Shown here: positions 710-12,136 of the stretch, piece by piece
How the letters are laid out: each line of letters begins with the position of its first letter
Numbering within the stretch: the first letter of the stretch is position 1
NCBI GenBank assembly: GCA_021613535.1
Contig: CP075497.1
Span: forward strand, 4,588,001 to 4,652,000
Length of the DNA stretch: 64,000 nt
Source: Adineta vaga
Taxonomy: Eukaryota > Animalia > Rotifera
Direction: 5' to 3'
The notes under the pieces: generated by a model
Told to the model about the DNA's origin: nothing
Seen by the model: only the letters and a program-made list of their open reading frames with translations
The model's database searches: none
Made by a program: the position numbers and the translations under genes

Positions 710-3137
710 TTATGATGAACGTTGTTGTAAAGCATTTGCTTCGAGACTTGCTAATTCTTCTTGTGTCATTTCGTGTTGTTTATTAAGTTCAGCAATTTGT
801 TGAACAAGAAGAAGACGTTCTTGTAAGATTTTTTCTAAGATTGTTTCATTCTACATAATGAAAAAAGAACTAATGAATATTTACATCAAAAGAAAAGACA
901 AACATACATTTGAAGCTGTTGTTGTTAGACTATTTGATGCACCTGTTAAACCATTATTAGTTGCATTTCGTAACATACTCGTTGTTGAATTACTTTTCGG
1001 AAGACCTGATTCAAATAAATCATAGGATGATGGTAAATCAATTGGACTTATCATTGATGAACGTGATTCTTGTTCAAGGATTCGTCGTTGAGGAATTTGT
1101 CGAGAAAAATCATGGGTATGATTATCATTTGTTGAAATAGCTGAACCTGGTCGAGAATATTTGTTTGATATCTCATTTGATTCACTATATGTCGAATAAC
1201 GATATTGATTCATATCTGTTGGTGTCGCTATAACAAAAGAAAAGGCATTGAAATATAAATATATTAAATAAAAGAAACGTAACAAACCTGTATTCATCCG
1301 TTGAGTATAGCTGAGTAATTCATCGGTCGAAATGATTTTTGTTCGTTGTGGTTGAGAATTGTTATTATTTGTATTTGAGAAATGTTGTCTTGGTTCAGCT
1401 ATTTGATGTTCGATTCGATCTCGTTGTGTACGAGCTGAATTCATCGGTGTTGGTTGAGAAATCGAATTATTTGTTGTTTTCTTTGTAGAAATTATTTCAT
1501 TATTAACAAGTTGACAAACAGTTTGCATCATTGTTTGTAACATTGATATTTGATTTTCGATTTTTTGTTGAAAATCTAATTGAGCTTTGATAACAACTGA
1601 AAGTTGATCTTTAAGAATATTTGTATCTTGATTTGCTTGTTGACCTTTCGTACTAAGTGCACACTTAAATGAATGGAAAAAAAATAAAATCATATAAATA
1701 AAAGAAGAATTTTTTTGTTTTTACCTGTTTAACATGACCTGTTAATGAAATGAGAGCAGTGAGAAGAGCTGTACTACAAGTATTTGCTTGATTATGTAAT
1801 GATGAATTCGTTTTCTCGGATTTGAATCCTGTTATAGTTTCTAAATCATTTAATTCATAAGATAAACGATCAAGTAACTAAATAAATCAAAGGGTATGTT
1901 TTTTAGTGTCTAACAGAGAACAAAATTGACATACCGTTTTCAATTGATTTGTCGATGAAGTATTGTTAGTCAAGTCTGTTGGAGTAGTAGTTTTACCAAT
2001 AAGTTTTGATGTATCAGACATAAATGAAACATTATTAACAGGTCGAGTTCCATTTGATTGTTGTCGCGATTGAGAATACTGATTTAAATTACGAGTTGTT
2101 GTTGTTGTTGAATGGAATGGATCACGTTCAGTAGAAGATTCACGATGGTGATGATGTTGTCGTTGAGAATTTGATTTTGAATTTGAACGATTCAAACGTA
2201 CTGGTTCATTTTCAAGTTCATCTTCTTCACCTTCTTGTGAACTAACGGAAATGTTATCTAAATTCATTTAAAAATTATTGAAATTCTGTCAATAAAAAAA
2301 GATTCTTAATATACCTTCTTCCGATTGATTCCAATCTGCACCACCTGGTGAATTTAAATTCCTTATCGATGATTGTCTAGAACAAATCCAGGAAAATATG
2401 TAAAACAAACATTAACGTATTATTTATACTTTGTTGAAGAGGTTGATGTTTTTCTTGTTCGACCATTAGTTAAACTTGTAAAATGATTTTTTCCACTACG
2501 TAACTAAAAAATTCGATTATTGAAGTTCTTGTTTTTTTTTTCAAAATTCGAACTGTTTCTTACTACGCTACTTTTTGGAACGAATTTTTCTGATCGACTT
2601 GAATGTAAAACATGATTCGATTTTTGCACCAATTCATCGATCTAAATAAACAATTTCTATTGAAAGATTTGTTTTTTTTCCAAATCTCGTTATTTACGTC
2701 TCGTTCATTGAATAATATTTCACGTAAAATACCCAATTGATTACTGTTATTTTTCTTTGCATCCTGAACGGCTAGAATTGAAGAATCGATTAATATTTTT
2801 TATCATTTTTTCAAACAAAACCTTTTGCTAAAACTTTTCGTTGTTTTTCTTCTTGAATTAATTGTAAATTACGTGATTGATACGCTTGTTTTCGTCGTGA
2901 CTAAAATATGACAACAAAATCGATTTATTCCTTTTTTGTTTGTTTCATTGAAATAGAAAAATCATATATATTTACGGTTTCATCATCACTTAAACGATGT
3001 TGAGATAAATCGCCAACTGTTGACTAAAATAAATGTTCATTATTAATACGAAATCGAATTAATTCTCTTACATCCCAATCTTGATGTTTTTTTAAAGTAG
3101 TTTTCTTTTGTGGACGACGAATATTTGTTTTCGACAT
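710..3137 (-). CDS. SPICE1: Spindle and centriole-associated protein 1 (multi-exon)
   Basis: Hand-spliced N-terminus MSKTNIRRPQKKTTLKKHQDWD|STVGDLSQHRLSDDET...QLGILREILLNE resembles the SPICE1 motifs WDNTVTDLTVHR and RLSIMKEILSD. The C-terminal coil LVQQIAELNKQHE resembles ARIAELNRQS. ORFs 881-1693 and 1887-2267 are internal exons; stop at 710-712. Confidence 0.75.
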
Positions 3138-3365
3138 GTTGTTTTCTAAGTGCAAATCAATAGTATATGAATTACAAAAAATTGAACCATCAGAAATGTA
3201 TTCCTATGACAACAATCCTCTTCTCCCCTTTCATGATGTCATGAACAAAGCGTCATCTATTTCTTTTAAAATGCCTAGCAACGACATACATATATTTTCT
3301 TTTATAACATACAGATGAATTGTTACCGCAAGGTCGACAAACTTCGTTAATCAAATCTATCAAAA
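3138..3365. promoter_or_regulatory. Putative bidirectional promoter with RFX X-box-like sites
   Basis: 228-bp gap between divergent ATGs (3137 -, 3366 +). Contains TGCCTAGCAAC (3272-3282), TTCCTATGACAAC (3201-3213) and a GTTACC half-site (3322-3327), resembling the X-box GTNRCC-N0-3-RGYAAC. Confidence 0.55.
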
Positions 3366-6300
3366 ATGTTGAAAGCAGGCCTATTACCATCACCAACTAT
3401 TAATGCATTGTCATCGAATGTAGGAACTTCGAAGAATAAAATTGATACACAAACATTTGTTGAACTACGATCTGGTTTGTTGCTAGAGACAAAATTTTGT
3501 TCAGAGAAAAATAAAACATTGATTTATCTCTTAGATATTCCACATGTTCGAATATATTTTAGTGTGGATGGAACAAAACCGGATCCATTTCAAATATTTA
3601 AAACTGGCCATGTATCTACATATCTTTATCGTGGTGCATTTCGTCTTGGACCAGGACGACGTGTCGTAAAAGCTATGGCTGTTACTACGTAACTAAAGAA
3701 CTGTTAGGATTTGATGAATAATACTATTTTTCTTTAATTTTTTTCAAGTGATGGATTACGAGAAAGTAATATAACAACAAAATATTTTGATGTAGATGAT
3801 AAGTATTCAGAAGCTTATCCAGAATATCCGGAATATTCGAATGAATATCCCGATAATGATCAATCATTCAATCAAATCAATTTAAGTCCAGTACGAACAA
3901 TTTTCTTGTTCTATAGAATCATTTTCATGTGTATCAAATAGGAACGATCTCCACCATTGAATAAAACGAAAAAACCACGTCATAGTGCTGATCATCGTCG
4001 ATCAAATTCAGCTAATCAAGCAAGAAATGATTTTGGACGAACCCAATTCGACGATGGATTCAATGTGCAAAGTACTATCGAAGGTCCAATTTCACCTGTA
4101 AATTATGCAGGTACACAAATTAATATTTGGGGTTCACCAGGAGGAAATATGAGCGATGAATTAATGCATATTGCTGATCCAAGTAGAAATTATGGTTATA
4201 TGACAGAACAAATGCTTGAAGTGAGTTTTTTTCTTCTCGAGCTTTTCTTTTCTATGATTGATATTTACTATATAGCGTATTCAACCATCGAAAAATTTAG
4301 CAATTGGACCACCTCAAATAACTGATGTTGCTGAGCAAGAAGATTTTTGGGATCGAAAACCAAAACCAGTCAGTCCAGGCAATGGCAATTGGAAGAAAAC
4401 ACTGGAACATCTGTTTTTGAACATCTATAATTATGTTAAAGATGAACAAGAATTGCGTGAACTTTTTGGTTGGAAAAAATTTGGACGAGTAATTGAAAAT
4501 TTAAATAATTGTATCTTCGTCAATGTCATTTTTCCCTAGATTGAAACAGCTAAGTTAATTGATAAAGGTAATACTTATCAAATTATCACAACATTTAAGA
4601 AACCTCTTGGTGAACAATCAACATATGAAGAGCCACCACCTATTCAAAGACCACGTCCACAACGACGACCACCGAAACGTAATCGAACACCACCGGATAC
4701 TCCACCAGAAAGACCAGTTCGACCTGTTGAAACAACACCACCACCTACACCACCCCCTATCAATATTCATTCAGATGAATCCATCAATGATAAATCTACT
4801 GCTCGTTCACCACGTATCTATACCGAAGAAATTGTGGTAAATTAATTTCTATACATTTCATATTTTCTTCTTAAATACTTTATTCATATAGCAACAAGGA
4901 ACATTGGTACCATTTGCTGAATTTAATGTTCAACGAGGTGAAACTAGATTTTGTAGAGATACGTAGAATTATTAAATGATTTCTTCGATTCGTAGATTGT
5001 GAAAATCTTCGTAAAGCAATGAAAGGTCTTGGAACAGATGATGATATGCTTGTTCACATTCTTGGTAATCGTAGTAGTGATCAACGAGTGAAAATTCGTG
5101 ATCAATATAAAATTTTGTTTGGTCGGGTAAGAAATCTGTCAAATAAAATGTTCAATTTAAAAATCAATGGAAACCTATATCTAGGATTTAGCTGAGATAT
5201 TAAAAGCGATACATCTGGAAATTTTTGCAAAGTTTTAACAAATCTTCTTTATGATCCTGTTACATACGATTGTCGTGAATTGAAGCGAGCAGTGAAAGGA
5301 GCAGGAACAGATGAAGAAGCATTGATCGAAATCCTCGCTAGTCGTTCCAATAAACGTATCAAAGCAATTAATGATCTTTATCCACAACGTAAATATGCAA
5401 TTTTCTAATCATTCATACATTTCATTCTGATTCTTTTTTCTATAGTCTACTCTCGATCATTGGAAAAAGATATTGTGGGTGATACAAGTGGCCATTTGAA
5501 AAAAATATTAGTGACATTAGCACAAGGAAATCGACCAGAAACGAATGAAATCAATGAAGACGAAGCAGAAAATGATGCCAAAACTTTATATGAAGCAGGT
5601 GAAAAGAAATGGGGAACAGATGAATCCAAATTCGTAGAGATTATAGCTGATCGAAGGTTGATTAGTTAATTTTCATCAATAACCTTTGTTTTCTAATTTG
5701 TTTTATTAGCAATGCACAATTAAAAGCGATTTGTGATGCATATAGTCATTACAGTAAAAAAGATATTGAAAAAGCAATTGAATCTGAAACAAGTGGAAAT
5801 TTACGTCGAGCTTTATTAGCAATTGGTAAGTAAAGAATGAAATTTTCATTATGATGCAAAGGAAAAAACGAACCGTTAGAATCAGTAAATGACATATGAT
5901 CGTATGTTTTCTTTTAGTTCGTGTTATGCGTAGTCGGCCAGGTTATTTCGCCCAACAACTGAAAAAAGCATTAAAGGTATGTTCGATGATTTCTTCTTTT
6001 TCTTGATCAATTTGATAAAGGACACTACTTTTAGTTTCTATTCTATAAATTAAAGACAGATATAAGGTAAACGGCATGAGAAAAATTATTGACATGCAAT
6101 GCGTTTTTTTTTGCATCAAAATATCAATTTATGTTATAGCTTTTGGAAAAAATGAAATCACTTGATGCTAAACATCTATTTTGCTTGAAAAATAGTTCAT
6201 TTGAGAAGATCTTTGAGAAATAGAAAACAATACGTTCGACTTGAATAGCTTAATATATTTTTTGTTTATATAGGGTATGGGTACAAACGAAGATGAATTG

Positions 6301-7885
6301 AATCGTGTTATTATATCACGATGTGAAGTTGATATGATTCAAATTAAAGAAGAATACGAAAGTTTAATGAAACGTTCATTAGAAAAACATGTTCATGTAT
6401 GTTAAACTTTCATTTTCGTATATATTTACTGATATTAAACACATTTCTAGAGTGACACTAGTGGTAGCTATCGAAATATTATCATGGAATTATTAAAGAA
6501 TCCAAATGAACGAACTCAAAAAGCTGGCAGTGGTAAGATATCTTCTATTTCACGATCACTTCTTTGATTAAAAATATTTTTTCTTTTTAGCAAAATATGA
6601 AAATGTTGAATTACCTGGTTACAAGCAACCAGAGATTTATAAAGAAGATCTCATTGTAAATTGTTTCTTTACTTTTATTTTTTGAATTGTATCTTCGAAC
6701 ATTCATTTCTAGCAACAAGGAACAATGACAGCAAAAGTTAATTTTAATGCTGGCAGTGATGCAGATGCTTTACGAAAAGCCATGAAAGGACTTGGTACTG
6801 ATGAAAAAACTCTCATTGATATCTTAGGAAATCGAACTACTGCCCAACGATTACAAATCAAATCAGCTTTCAAAGATAAGCATAATCGAGTAGGACATTG
6901 ATTTTAAAACATTTTCTTTTGTCATCAAGTATTTTACATGAATAGGATTTGGTGCATGATTTAAAATCTGAAACATCGGGCAATTTTGCGAATTTACTCG
7001 AACGATTAATGATGGATCCAGTTGAACTGGATTGTTTTGAATTGAAACAAGGTGTAAAAGGATTAGGTACTGATGAAGAAACTTTAATTGAAATACTAGC
7101 AAGTCGTAGTAATGAACGATTGAAAGCAATCACGGAAACCTATCAAAAAAGTAAACTTTAAACGATGTCAATTTTATGATTTAAAAAGATATATTTAGTG
7201 TATGGAAAACCACTGGAAAAAGATGTTAAATCAGATACAAGTGGAGATTTCCGTCGACTACTTGTGTCATTAATGCAAGGTAGTCGACCAGAGACAACAG
7301 AAGTCAACGTGGAAGAAGCTAAAACAGATGCTCAAACATTGATTGATGCAGGACAAGCAAAATTTGGAACAGATGAAGCAAGATTCAATGTTCTATTCTG
7401 CAGTCGAAGTGATCCACAATTACGAGCAATCTTTAATGAATTTGCTAAATTAACAGGCAAATCTGTTGGTAAGATATTTATTAGAATTGCCGTTTATCAT
7501 TTTGATCTATCTGCATTTTTCTTAACAGAGGATACAGTAAAAAGTGAAACAAGTGGTGATCTTCAAAAAGGTCTCATGGCTATTATTCGATGTGTACGAA
7601 GTCGTCCATATTTTTTTGCTGAACAATTACGCAAAGCAATGAAAGTAAGATGATTTCATTTCCTTTGTCTTTTATCTAATTCGATTTTCATAGGGATTGG
7701 GCACAAAAGAATCCACATTAAATCGTATTCTAATAACACGTTCAGAAATTGATCTTGTTCAAATCAAGGAAGCATTTAGTCGTCAATTCAATCGAGAATT
7801 AGAACAAGATGTTAGTAAAGAAACAAGTGGAGATTATAAGAAGTTACTTTTAGAAATACTCAAAGATCCATCTAAACGTAATTGA
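3366..7885 (+). CDS. DZANK1-like N-terminal region fused to an eight-repeat (two-tetrad) annexin
   Basis: Continuous spliced frame through GT-AG introns: [12 protein letters not shown]...[11 protein letters not shown]|[17 protein letters not shown]...VKAMAVT|[16 protein letters not shown] (DZANK1 N-domain); [15 protein letters not shown] (DZANK1 SPGxGxW motif); a Pro-rich linker; then 8 annexin repeats (GLGTD, GAGTD, KWGTD, GMGTN, GLGTD, GLGTD, KFGTD, GLGTK), each followed by (D/E)TSG. Stop at 7885. Confidence 0.85.
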
Positions 7886-8169
7886 TGAACAATAATTATA
7901 ATTTAAAAGAAATCTTTGACATTGTAATAATGAATAAAAAGTTGATGATGTTGTGCATAAAAAATATTTATTAACTTTAAGAAAAACTTTTGTATAATTC
8001 TATGAAATATGTATTCTATCAATTTTGATAGAGTAGAGTGATGATGAACATTGCTTATACAAATGATAATAGTGAAAAGATGAATATCAGTCTACTATTT
8101 GACTATATAGAAGAGTTCTTTGAAATATAACATCGAATAATAAAAAACAGTCTTGTAACTAAGACATTC

Positions 8170-8183
8170 GTTTTCTTAGCAAC
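8170..8183. promoter_or_regulatory. X-box-like motif upstream of the ERICH3-like gene
   Basis: GTTTTCTTAGCAAC about 250 bp upstream of the ATG at 8435. Confidence 0.4.
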
Positions 8184-8434
8184 GAAACAAAATGATGAAG
8201 AGGACCTTTACAATTTTAAGTGTCCAATATTAAATATATTGTCCTAGATTTTTACCTAGTGCAGATTGTTATATAAATAAATCTCTCGGAAATATTTTCT
8301 ATATAATGTTTGTCAATTGATAAAAGCCATTCAGGACAAAGATCTGTTTTACTTTTTGTATTTCTTCATCAACTCAGTCGATTGTTTTCCATACAGAAGC
8401 CTTATTTCATTATCAAATCTTCAAACGAAGAATA

Positions 8435-9697: not shown

Positions 9698-12136
9698 TTA
9701 GGAAAACTTGTTAAATCCATGTGAATCCAATTTATCTCTTTCATATAAGTCCTTTTCTTGTAACGTTGCTTTTCGACAACCAAACTTTTCTTTATCAGTA
9801 TTTCGTCGTGCACGTATTTCTCCATTATCAAATTTGATTGCTGGTCTTCGATAGAACTCATACGTATTCCAATGTTCAATTTTTTTCTCAGGATCTTTCA
9901 ATATAATTGTATCTGTTAGTAACGGAACTTGTGATGGAATTAAAAATGATGGTCGACATATGACATCGATAAAAATATTTCGTATATCTTCTAGATTGAG
10001 AATATGTTTGATGTTTAATTCGGTAAAATATCGTAATAAGAGTTTTATTGCATATCGAACAACTATTTGTATACTTGAATATTTCATTTCATTCAATATA
10101 ATTTCTTGTCGTTGTGGCGAATAATGAGAACATCCTTTCCAATAACTAGTACATTGCGAACATCCAACAATTTCTGGCTGAGTAGAGTTAGAAACTGTAT
10201 CCGTCTGTTCATCATTAATCGGAAGTCGATTAATCTGTTCTTCGTACATTATAGTTAATTCTTTAGCAATTTTGTAAGCCATTTCACACAACATTTCAGG
10301 ACTACTCAAACTTCCAAGATAACTTAATACATTTACAATTCGTTTTTCATCAAGTTTTATGATCTCATCATTCGATAAACCAACAGATGAGAATTCAAAT
10401 AATCTCGTTAAAAATTGAAATATCATCGATACTTTCAACACAGAACTTGGTAATGAAAGTAAACATATATCTGTACTAACCATGCGAATCCCATCGAATA
10501 GATTACATAATTGCATAGCAAAATATCTAAAGAATATTTCTTGTGCAGGTGAATCGGAAAATACCTTCAGATTTGTTTGTATTATATCACATTTCTTTAA
10601 TTGATATTGAACAAACATATTACGAACTTCATTAACAAAACATTTATGTAATGTATTCGATTTCATACGTTCATCTAATAGTAAAACACGAAGTTGTTTC
10701 CAATTTCTATTTGTATTAATATATTTGTCAAATACTTCATTTGTTTTTAAGATACTATCTGTTGCATATTGAATATATTTTTCAATAACGAATTCTGATG
10801 CAGTGTCATCTGAATATCTATTCGTTATAAAAGAAGTAATAGTTAAACAGTTGACGGCAAGTGCTATCGTATCTTCATCTCGCCAGCCATTTGGCAGTTT
10901 AGTAATCTCATTAATACGTTCACGTGCGTTTTCGTAGTGTTTGAGAGAATCTTTCGAATATGAAGCTTGTTTTTGTATGTATTCAGCAATGATTCGAATA
11001 ATATCAGCTCGAGTTAAAATATCATGATTAAGATCAAGAAAGATTTCTGTTTCTTGTATTTTTTTTGCGAAATAAATATATAATTTTTTGTTATTATCGG
11101 ATTTGTACGAATAGATATTCGTTTGTGATGCATGAGCTGTTTGTCCAAGCTCAATTGCTGTACGATAATCGTCAACAGCTGCATCATGATGTCCCAATTC
11201 ATATTGAATCATTCCACGTGCATAAAATACATCTGATTCATTTCCATTAAGTTTCGTTGATTTATTGAAATTAATCAATGCTTTTTCAGGTTTATTCAAA
11301 ATCATGAAAGATAAACCTCGACGAAATAAAATTCGATCATTAATTCTTGATGATCCTTGTTTTATTGAATCATTTAATGCATCTTTAAAATCTATCAATG
11401 CTTTATCATGTCGATCAAGACTTGCATGACAAAGACCTCGTCGAAATCGAATATGATCATTTGATATTGGTATTAATTTACATTTCGTTCCTTTCGAATT
11501 CAATAAATCATCGAATTCAACCAGTGCATCATGATATCGACCTAATTCACTATAAGCACAACCTTTAATAAAATGATCTTGACTTTGTTCACAAACAACA
11601 ACGAGATCTTTTCGTGCTTGATCGTATTTTGCAGTACAAGCATAGGCTCGTCCACGATGAAGATAATACCATTTTTGTTTATCTTCATCGCTTCCTGAAC
11701 TATCTTCAATAGCACGAGTAAAATGTGAGATCGCTTCATCATATTGATTTAACATTGCATAAATAACTCCGATTTGAAATTGTCCTTTATGTCGATGAAT
11801 GTTTAATTCTGTATGATTTTTACATAGATTAACATAGAGTTTATAATCATCTAATGCAGAATCGAATTGATTGATTTTAAATTTAGAAAAAGCACGTTTA
11901 TATAATGCTAATAATCGTTTTGCATGTGAACAATTTTCTAAAAAGATTGTTGAACTAAAATCATCAATAGCTTGTTCATATTCAGTAAGATGAAGATATG
12001 CACAACCACGATAAAAATATCCATCCGAATCAGTTCGATTTTGTAAAATTAATAAAGTAAATTCTTCGACTGCCTTATCGTATTGTTCGTTTCGTGCATA
12101 TTGAAGGCCAGTATTGACTTGCGGTAGAGTTGTCAT
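9698..12136 (-). CDS. Intronless tetratricopeptide-repeat protein with an uncharacterised C-terminal domain (812 aa)
   Basis: Single 2.4-kb ORF. The N-terminal ~330 aa has repeated TPR consensus (e.g. GYFYRGCAYLHLTEYEQAIDDFS, VFYARGMIQYELGHHDAAVDDYRTAIEL). Confidence 0.9.
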   Translation of the reverse strand: MTTLPQVNTGLQYARNEQYDKAVEEFTLLILQNRTDSDGYFYRGCAYLHLTEYEQAIDDFSSTIFLENCSHAKRLLALYKRAFSKFKINQFDSALDDYKLYVNLCKNHTELNIHRHKGQFQIGVIYAMLNQYDEAISHFTRAIEDSSGSDEDKQKWYYLHRGRAYACTAKYDQARKDLVVVCEQSQDHFIKGCAYSELGRYHDALVEFDDLLNSKGTKCKLIPISNDHIRFRRGLCHASLDRHDKALIDFKDALNDSIKQGSSRINDRILFRRGLSFMILNKPEKALINFNKSTKLNGNESDVFYARGMIQYELGHHDAAVDDYRTAIELGQTAHASQTNIYSYKSDNNKKLYIYFAKKIQETEIFLDLNHDILTRADIIRIIAEYIQKQASYSKDSLKHYENARERINEITKLPNGWRDEDTIALAVNCLTITSFITNRYSDDTASEFVIEKYIQYATDSILKTNEVFDKYINTNRNWKQLRVLLLDERMKSNTLHKCFVNEVRNMFVQYQLKKCDIIQTNLKVFSDSPAQEIFFRYFAMQLCNLFDGIRMVSTDICLLSLPSSVLKVSMIFQFLTRLFEFSSVGLSNDEIIKLDEKRIVNVLSYLGSLSSPEMLCEMAYKIAKELTIMYEEQINRLPINDEQTDTVSNSTQPEIVGCSQCTSYWKGCSHYSPQRQEIILNEMKYSSIQIVVRYAIKLLLRYFTELNIKHILNLEDIRNIFIDVICRPSFLIPSQVPLLTDTIILKDPEKKIEHWNTYEFYRRPAIKFDNGEIRARRNTDKEKFGCRKATLQEKDLYERDKLDSHGFNKFS

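Follow-up and report, generated by a model that had tools for sequence, protein, structure and literature searches.

A DZANK1-like head joined to eight annexin repeats in Adineta vaga: an expressed fusion gene and a putative Ca2+-gated microtubule–membrane tether

We analysed a 64,000-nt window of the AT-rich Adineta vaga genome (contig CP075497.1, positions 4,588,001–4,652,000); all positions given here count from the first letter of this window, and all features lie on its forward (+) strand. Positions 3366–7885 constitute a single expressed and spliced gene, with an ATG at 3366 and a TGA at 7883–7885. Its 20 exons total 3192 nt (1063 codons plus the stop, counting one base that the window lacks; see below) and encode a protein of approximately 1063 amino acids. 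cDNA-like contigs of 3229–3311 nt from runs X11, X12 and X16, which come from three studies, span approximately 3316–7956 with all introns spliced out. The contigs start at 3315–3318, giving a 5′ UTR of 3316–3365, and the 3′ UTR (7886–7956) extends to the end of the longest of them (X16).

The transcript contigs pass every GT..AG intron, including the phase-0 intron 4837–4891 that leads from the head and linker into the annexin part. Here, 55 nt are spliced out (4836|4892; joint 4835/4891 in the contigs), and a contig from a fourth run, X18, which carries a different organism label, spans the same junction. The sequence-only reading had proposed one spliced frame from a DZANK1-like head into annexin repeats through the intron ending at 4891, and the contigs of the three studies, together with X18 at the junction, bear this out. 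Transcripts X11, X12 and X16 also lack an additional in-frame intron of 60 nt (3475–3534; joint 3473/3534), and 20 residues that had been read as part of the N-terminal domain are therefore intron sequence. An Rfam scan of 3000–8300 gave no signal above chance, and intron 5977–6273, unusually long at 297 nt, showed no folding above chance.

The head is encoded by exons 1–6. Exon 1 (3366–3474) comprises the start codon and an N-terminal peptide that aligns from its methionine with the N-terminus of the canonical DZANK1 on C2. Exon 2 (3535–3688) forms the core of an Fn3_assoc/CHB_HEX_C-like N-domain and is the best-conserved part of the head. Exon 3 (3749–3891), which is preceded by a phase-2 intron, contains the end of this domain (D-G-L-R-E-S...) and an acidic Tyr/Pro-rich stretch. 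Exon 4 (3942–4220) encodes a basic, probably disordered stretch followed by a conserved island (4080–4133), which is the counterpart of the DZANK1 G-T-Q-T and a candidate binding site for LC8 light chains. Exon 5 (4276–4488) contains S-P-G-N-G-N-W and a helix-rich segment homologous to DZANK1 residues 458–511. The first 26 codons of exon 6 (4540–4617) form the last DZANK1-like segment (...T-T-F-K-K-P versus canonical ...T-I-F-Q-K-P), and the remainder (4618–4836) is a Pro/Arg-rich linker that ends in a conserved P-R-I-Y-T-E-E-I-V.

Homology, fold and Pfam searches were carried out with the predicted protein exon by exon. The genome contains two ordinary DZANK1 genes, on C5 and C2. These canonical genes show Pfam matches to Fn3_assoc (8e-10), DZR (1.6e-10) and Ank (6e-8), and one of them matches the DZANK1 chain 11xu_G1 in the PDB at 1.5e-17. 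Exons 1, 2, 3 and 5 of the fusion gene give collinear tblastn matches to the two genes (E 0.013, 3e-7, 6e-5 and 5e-8, respectively), and the position of the phase-2 intron before exon 3 is identical in both. In hhalign comparisons with the canonical DZANK1, the N-domain aligns with 98% probability (E 2e-13) and the S-P-G-x-G-x-W helical segment with 96.5%. A search of PDB sequences with exon 5 returns DZANK1 as the sole match (E 0.006, residues 458–511), and with exon 2 DZANK1 is the best match (E 0.024, residues 39–86); exons 4 and 6 yield nothing meaningful in the same search. Pfam alone leaves the N-terminal domain below cut-off. AlphaFold2 predicts two helices for exon 5 on its own (15 sequences; mean pLDDT 68), a fold too small to serve in structure comparison.

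Exon 5 was also used in two broader searches. The ESM Atlas search provided no lead (scores <0.9), and library-wide phmmer retrieved nothing beyond short fragments of read-through ORFs from relatives and a single distant fragment (P0010), with no full-length annotated protein; matches P0008, P0009 and P0011 were rejected as repeat or low-complexity matches.

Judging from these sequence comparisons, residues 1 to ∼225 and ∼255–325 are derived from a DZANK1 paralogue. They share with DZANK1, in the same order, the N-terminal peptide, the Fn3_assoc-like domain, a T-Q island, variable among orthologues (see below), at the place of G-T-Q-T, and the S-P-G-x-G-x-W segment with its following strands. 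Thus, apart from the 20 intronic residues, the proposal of a DZANK1-derived head agrees with hhalign, tblastn and the PDB matches. Since two ordinary DZANK1 genes are retained in the genome, the fusion gene is a diverged paralogue rather than an orthologue.

Two parts of DZANK1 are missing. Whereas the zinc ribbons occupy ∼1.3 kb of exons in the canonical genes, the fusion gene has a single 93-codon exon (exon 4) in this place. Exons 1–6 are free of CxxC motifs, and indeed of any cysteine, and give no match to Pfam DZR (PF12773); the head therefore has no zinc ribbons, as had been noted from the DNA. Also, the C-terminal ankyrin repeats of DZANK1 are replaced by a linker and eight annexin repeats. 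Ankyrin repeats were not found in the fusion gene, where Pfam identifies Annexin at the C-terminus; Ank is present only in the canonical DZANK1 genes of the genome.

Annexin repeats 1–4 (tetrad 1, 4892–6532, defined by Pfam and transcripts) are encoded by exons 4892–4936, 4996–5126, 5185–5388, 5446–5656, 5710–5825, 5918–5976, 6274–6396 and 6451–6532. A linker exon (6591–6655) ending in P-E-I-Y-K-E-D-L-I connects them to repeats 5–8 and the stop codon (tetrad 2, 6713–7885; exons 6713–6889, 6946–7150, 7199–7468, 7529–7644 and 7694–7885). Pfam Annexin (PF00191) matches every exon tested from 4998 on with 1e-10 to 1e-20 per exon, at or slightly under the curated cut-off, and together these exons cover all eight repeats of ∼70 residues. 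Each of the eight repeats has G-x-G-T or K-(W/F)-G-T, with the acidic residue of (D/E)-T-S-G 39 residues after the threonine; the spacing was counted by hand, across exon borders for repeats 1 and 5. The exon translations thus confirm that GT and the acidic cap are kept throughout, and all eight predicted type-II Ca2+ sites are intact.

The best PDB matches of the annexin part are annexins VI, XII and A7. Across the whole genome, a tetrad-2 exon has its nearest relative in the corresponding exon of tetrad 1 (51% identity), whereas matches to the remaining annexins have E values of 3e-7 or weaker, and the P-E-I-Y-K-E-D-L-I before tetrad 2 is a copy of the motif preceding tetrad 1. By these relationships, the two tetrads are an internal duplication within this gene family.

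Vertebrate annexin A6 (PDB 1avc and 1m9i) likewise carries two tetrads on one chain with a linker in between, and it is the top PDB match only since both of its halves contribute to the score. However, its tail is short, whereas the head of the fusion protein comprises ∼400 residues, and the intactness of all eight Ca2+ sites, judged by sequence, also sets the fusion protein apart from A6. The octad of A6 is of separate origin; in the fusion gene, each tetrad has the other as its nearest relative in the genome, and the duplication took in the pre-core motif with its intron as well. A common origin with the A6 duplication is ruled out by this proximity of the tetrads and by a distant relative with a single tetrad (see below). 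Annexins A7 and A11, like the fusion protein, have a Pro-rich segment directly ahead of a Q-G-T-type core start, and A7 ranks among the top single-tetrad matches in the PDB. Both A7 and A11 have Pro/Gly/Tyr-rich heads of low complexity, whose EF-hand partners include sorcin and ALG-2, and annexins with such long Pro-rich heads have roles in membrane aggregation and repair. In contrast, the fusion protein has folded DZANK1-type modules upstream of its Pro-rich part. Alpha-giardins, the annexin homologues on flagellar and disc microtubules of Giardia, place an annexin fold on microtubule-based and flagellar structures and may serve as a functional analogy only; they have a single tetrad, no DZANK1-like module and an unrelated origin.

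The architecture is found elsewhere. All 20 exons are present, in order, on five metagenome contigs (L006, L033, L035, L039 and L041), and parts of the gene are found on approximately 10 shorter contigs. The N-domain is 78–96% identical in most close orthologues, 64–74% at more diverged bdelloid-like loci and ∼50% in a distant lineage. Compared with L006, the head has a dN/dS of 0.26 and the annexin part one of 0.17, indicating that the architecture is under purifying selection. In the distant lineage (contigs L013, L018–L020 and L043–L045), L045 shows the same ribbon-less head and Pro-rich linker followed by one annexin tetrad and then a stop, and the fusion is therefore older than the octad. 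The junction ...I-Y-T-E-E-I-V | Q-Q-G-T-L... and its intron are shared by many orthologues and the distant lineage. By homology, the fusion gene belongs to a conserved family, which also exists with a four-repeat annexin, and is not a one-off. A literature search on DZANK1 with annexin and on rotifer, Adineta and bryozoan annexins returned no description of this architecture. The combination of a DZANK1-like head with an annexin octad thus appears to be undescribed, consistent with the initial impression that it is uncharacterised.

The T-Q island is less constant. T-Q-I of exon 4, at the place of the DZANK1 T-Q-T, is invariant in approximately 10 orthologues but degenerate, altered or lost in others, and it is also lost or altered in the distant four-repeat lineage. 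LC8 binding can therefore not be a universal function of the family. The canonical LC8 gene of the genome is split by introns, and a separate intron-free LC8-like domain is also present.

DZANK1 has been linked to vesicle transport in photoreceptors. The protein is located at basal bodies and microtubules, pulls down only DYNLL1/2, and interacts with NINL through its zinc-finger region, to which the interaction was mapped (amino acids 244–317; PMC4617706). In bovine transition-zone doublets, dimers of DZANK1 and of LC8 have been assigned as A-tubule MAPs, that of DZANK1 by AI docking (preprint; bioRxiv 10.64898/2026.06.11.731632). Since the zinc ribbons are absent from the fusion head, the mapped NINL-binding part is gone, and the functional proposal that had invoked NINL calls for adjustment.

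We propose that the annexin octad would bind acidic phospholipid membranes upon a rise in Ca2+ and that the DZANK1-like head would position or dimerise it on DZANK1-decorated structures, the microtubules of the ciliary base and transition zone, perhaps via LC8-type light chains. In ciliated cells, this would make the protein a Ca2+-gated tether between microtubules and membranes or vesicles, in which the annexin substitutes for the ankyrin module of DZANK1. Extrapolated from the sequence, Ca2+-dependent membrane tethering at ciliary-base microtubules is a plausible role. The reading as a whole, an expressed fusion of DZANK1 head and annexin octad acting as such a tether at the ciliary base, is in our judgement probable, if by a modest degree. 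Several points speak against the tether, namely the absent NINL-binding region, the loss or alteration of the T-Q island in some orthologues and the distant lineage, the reliance of the transition-zone assignment of DZANK1 on AI docking in a preprint, and the 1-nt frameshift of the window copy.

Some of the same observations would suit a head that is a mere dimerising or scaffolding module without a ciliary address. The protein would then be a bivalent or multivalent annexin for membrane aggregation, repair or vesicle coating anywhere in the cell, e.g., under desiccation and rehydration stress. The missing NINL-binding part and the patchy T-Q island are consistent with this, as are the activities of A7 and A11 with their long Pro-rich heads, A7 being among the best PDB matches, and the description of both DZANK1 and LC8 as dimers. 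However, the head is best conserved in the parts that it has in common with a protein for which only contexts at the ciliary base and microtubules are known, and dimerisation of the head is here only presumed. We therefore regard this explanation as possible but rather unlikely.

The window itself could be taken to indicate a pseudogene or null allele in this genome. It lacks one G at 5195/5196, and with the canonical acceptor (5184|5185), the frame breaks and terminates within a few codons. However, all four transcript assemblies, including those of three studies under the same organism label, read 18 nt here against 17 in the window, represent two synonymous haplotypes and keep the frame open. 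The site is flanked by two synonymous haplotype differences, a typical position for a consensus error, and dN/dS indicates constraint on the gene. A pseudogene or null allele is thus very improbable. The claim that neither a stop nor a separate start interrupts the frame holds for the transcripts, and no start follows the junction intron outside the annexin core, but it fails for the frameshifted DNA of the window.

That a short DZANK1-like gene and a neighbouring annexin gene were merely co-transcribed or mis-assembled into one contig is hardly credible, for although contigs are no proof of one molecule, splicing of the 55-nt intron preserves the frame, no stop precedes it and no start follows it outside the annexin core, and the junction motif is conserved with its intron into the distant lineage and was duplicated along with the second tetrad.

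The tether reading can be extended further. The fusion may be a ‘Rosetta stone’, in which the DZANK1 head is a self-sufficient docking module for the doublets of the ciliary transition zone and basal body, which at least two invertebrate lineages have wired directly to a membrane binder gated by Ca2+; we put this forward as a speculative and rather improbable idea. If true, it would provide a Ca2+-switchable link from microtubule to membrane at the ciliary gate and would imply that ordinary DZANK1 uses its ankyrin end for this same side, towards membrane or vesicle cargo. Even if the head does no more than dimerise, the gene would still represent a new annexin subfamily. It adds to the annexins, whose N-terminal heads determine function, an independently evolved eight-repeat member and its four-repeat sister form. 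DZANK1 is a poorly understood protein of the ciliary base, and a fusion retained by selection delimits those of its parts that are able to work without zinc ribbons and ankyrins. Its joining to a membrane-binding annexin hints, in a form that can be tested, at a DZANK1 pathway that may end on membranes.

The gene lies on the forward strand in a region of eukaryotic character (G+C 30%, GT..AG introns of ~55 nt). Chaining the open segments of the three-frame forward translation gives one reading that opens with the ATG at 3366 and closes with the TGA at 7883–7885. The stretch is contained in 20 sequencing runs according to the run index; several of them contain only around half of its words, the pattern expected of spliced RNA. 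We aligned four runs (X11, X12, X16 and X18) on 2900–8300; these data are contigs and serve as evidence of presence and splicing, not of abundance or transcript ends. X11, X12 and X16, from three studies with organism label A, each provide one contig of 3229–3311 nt on 3316–7956 with all introns removed. Among the introns spliced out is the 55-nt GT..AG intron that separates 4836 from 4892, and its excision brings the first annexin exon next to the Pro/Arg-rich linker. A 651-nt contig of X18 (organism label B) spans the same junction. The single spliced frame from a DZANK1-like head into annexin, proposed in the sequence-only reading, is borne out by X11, X12 and X16, and its head–annexin junction also by X18. 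The same reading took 3475–3534 as coding, but an in-frame intron is located there and is removed in the transcripts.

The claim that no stop interrupts the frame holds for the transcripts but not for the window DNA as written. At the start of the exon that begins at 5185, the window has 17 nt (5185–5201) where all four transcript assemblies have 18. One G is absent at 5195/5196, which shifts the frame of the sequence as written and leads it to a stop. Once this base is counted, the 20 exons total 3192 nt, corresponding to 1063 codons plus stop. The 18-nt site occurs in the transcripts as two haplotypes that differ synonymously at two positions, and since the missing G sits between these heterozygous positions, it is probably a consensus error.

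At 6530–6532, where the exon that closes tetrad 1 ends, ATT is found in X11 and X16 transcripts and GTG in the window and X18; two residues of the linker between the tetrads differ as a result, and the variation looks allelic. The intron at 5977–6273 is 297 nt long, compared with 51–92 nt for the others; Rfam gave no match for it, and shuffled sequence folds equally well. A divergent minus-strand gene, seen in 2900–3261 with a 48-nt intron (3024–3071), starts near 3137, which leaves only ~180 nt between it and the point where the annexin-gene transcripts begin. It is expressed, as contigs of X12 and X16 show, and a bidirectional promoter probably serves both genes. A TPR-rich ORF on the minus strand (9698–12136) comprises 811 uninterrupted codons, an unusual length for an intron-dense genome.

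Fused-gene searches were run exon by exon, with every exon as its own query. Against Pfam alone, exons 1–2 gave only a sub-threshold match to Fn3_assoc/CHB_HEX_C. In the window's own assembly (100.8 Mb, 6 contigs), exon 5 finds a single strong copy, and the fused gene is thus without a duplicate; two weak matches lie on contigs C5 and C2. A domain search identifies both loci (C5:9380701–9383856, L002/L008, and C2:10779529–10782690, L003/L009; both minus strand) as ordinary DZANK1 genes with Fn3_assoc (E 8e-10), double zinc ribbon (1.6e-10) and ankyrin repeats (6e-8). One of them matches the PDB DZANK1 chain 11xu_G1 (E 1.5e-17). The separate canonical DZANK1 that the first reading had proposed to look for exists twice in this assembly. 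The two genes are 62–69% identical in the compared segments and are probably a duplicate pair left from genome doubling.

Matches between the head exons and these canonical genes are collinear, with E-values of 0.013 for exon 1 (aligned from its initiator Met), 3e-7 for exon 2, 6e-5 for exon 3 and 5e-8 for exon 5. Among all PDB sequences, DZANK1 is the sole match of exon 5 (E 0.006, residues 458–511) and the best match of exon 2 (E 0.024, residues 39–86). When profiles of the fused family and of the canonical genes were compared, the exon-5 segment reached a probability of 96.5% (E 8e-10) and the N-domain one of 98% (E 2e-13). The fused gene and both canonical genes also have in common an intron after A-V-(T/S) that interrupts the following codon between its second and third bases. 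Collinear exons, PDB and profile matches and the common intron together argue that the head is a diverged DZANK1 paralogue, and we hold both the fused architecture and the DZANK1 homology of the head with high confidence. Whereas canonical DZANK1 has zinc-ribbon exons, the fused gene has one 93-codon exon at this place, and its head contains no cysteine at all, in keeping with the CxxC ribbons having been read as absent. The canonical ankyrin end is replaced.

Pfam matched Annexin in all exons tested, from 4998 to 7882. The exon translations contain the eight annexin repeats originally read, each with its GT and acidic cap: G-x-G-T is present in each except repeats 3 and 7, which have K-W/F-G-T, and in 8/8 repeats the acidic residue of (D/E)-T-S-G follows 39 residues past the T. 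G-x-G-T with a downstream acidic residue is the annexin type-II Ca2+ site. The closest solved structures are annexin VI, annexin XII and annexin A7, annexin VI scoring highest only because both its halves match. For a tetrad-2 exon, the best match anywhere else in its own genome is the corresponding exon of tetrad 1 (51% identity); other annexin genes score far lower. Moreover, the motif preceding tetrad 1 (I-Y-T-E-E-I-V/intron/Q-Q-G-T-L) recurs before tetrad 2 (I-Y-K-E-D-L-I/intron/Q-Q-G-T-M). Both observations indicate that the octad arose by internal duplication, separately from that of vertebrate annexin A6.

Relatives were traced from fragments found in a library-wide search to contigs of other organisms, and 19 further loci came from scanning metagenome contigs with aligned relatives of exon 5. 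The complete, ordered set of 20 exons is present on L006, L033, L035, L039 and L041 (42–90% identity per exon); ~10 shorter contigs carry consecutive parts, several spanning the head–annexin junction. Pairwise dN/dS of the window gene and L006 amounts to 0.26 across the head exons and 0.17 across the annexin exons (Nei–Gojobori, summed over exons). The fused gene is a real, conserved domain fusion. In one orthologue lineage (L010, L039–L041), exons 3–5 form a single ORF, two introns being gone, and exon 4 is reduced to ~25 residues that retain S-T-Q-D-W.

A distant lineage (the family of protein fragment P0010; L013, L018–L020, L043–L045; G+C ~0.4, 39% identity in exon 5) has the same ribbon-less head and an intron at the same place directly after ...G-R, with a Pro-rich linker leading into annexin. 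In L045, a contig of 13 kb, a stop follows four annexin repeats. From this shared head with a four-repeat annexin, we infer that the fusion predates the annexin doubling.

The T-Q island, a conserved head stretch in exon 4, is invariant in ~10 orthologues, changed in L037 and L010/L039, missing in L012 and L036, and cut down to A-G-T-V-F-Y-P-S in the distant lineage. The corresponding G-T-Q-T of DZANK1 is an LC8-type motif. Since the island is altered or absent in some relatives, LC8 binding is not the common denominator of the family; in the window's lineage, binding through this motif is possible. Dynein-light-chain domains (PF01221) occur at 13 places in the assembly (e.g., L021, L022 and L024–L026). 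Two ORFs of ~285 residues combine a low-complexity N-terminus with a well-conserved C-terminal LC8 domain, and the most canonical LC8 copies (contigs C4 and C1) are split by introns.

Vertebrate DZANK1 localises to basal bodies and microtubules; its zinc-finger region (aa 244–317) mediates NINL binding, and the dynein light chains DYNLL1/2 were the only proteins it pulled down (PMC4617706). In a preprint, AI-aided docking assigns a DZANK1 dimer, together with an LC8 dimer, to the A-tubule of the bovine transition-zone doublet, close to the inter-doublet linker (bioRxiv 10.64898/2026.06.11.731632). In the fused protein the part that binds NINL is gone; it retains the N-domain, the helical segment and the island at the G-T-Q-T place. 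The head would dock or dimerise the protein on DZANK1-type sites on ciliary-base microtubules, the octad would bind acidic membranes as Ca2+ rises, and annexin in place of the ankyrin module would form the membrane or cargo end. We put forward such a ciliary tether tentatively; the main rival, a non-ciliary multivalent annexin, seems nearly as likely to us. Literature searches turned up no description of a DZANK1–annexin protein, in keeping with the first reading, to which no characterised protein of this architecture was known. If the head of a ciliary tether does dock in this way, the fusion would be of greater significance.
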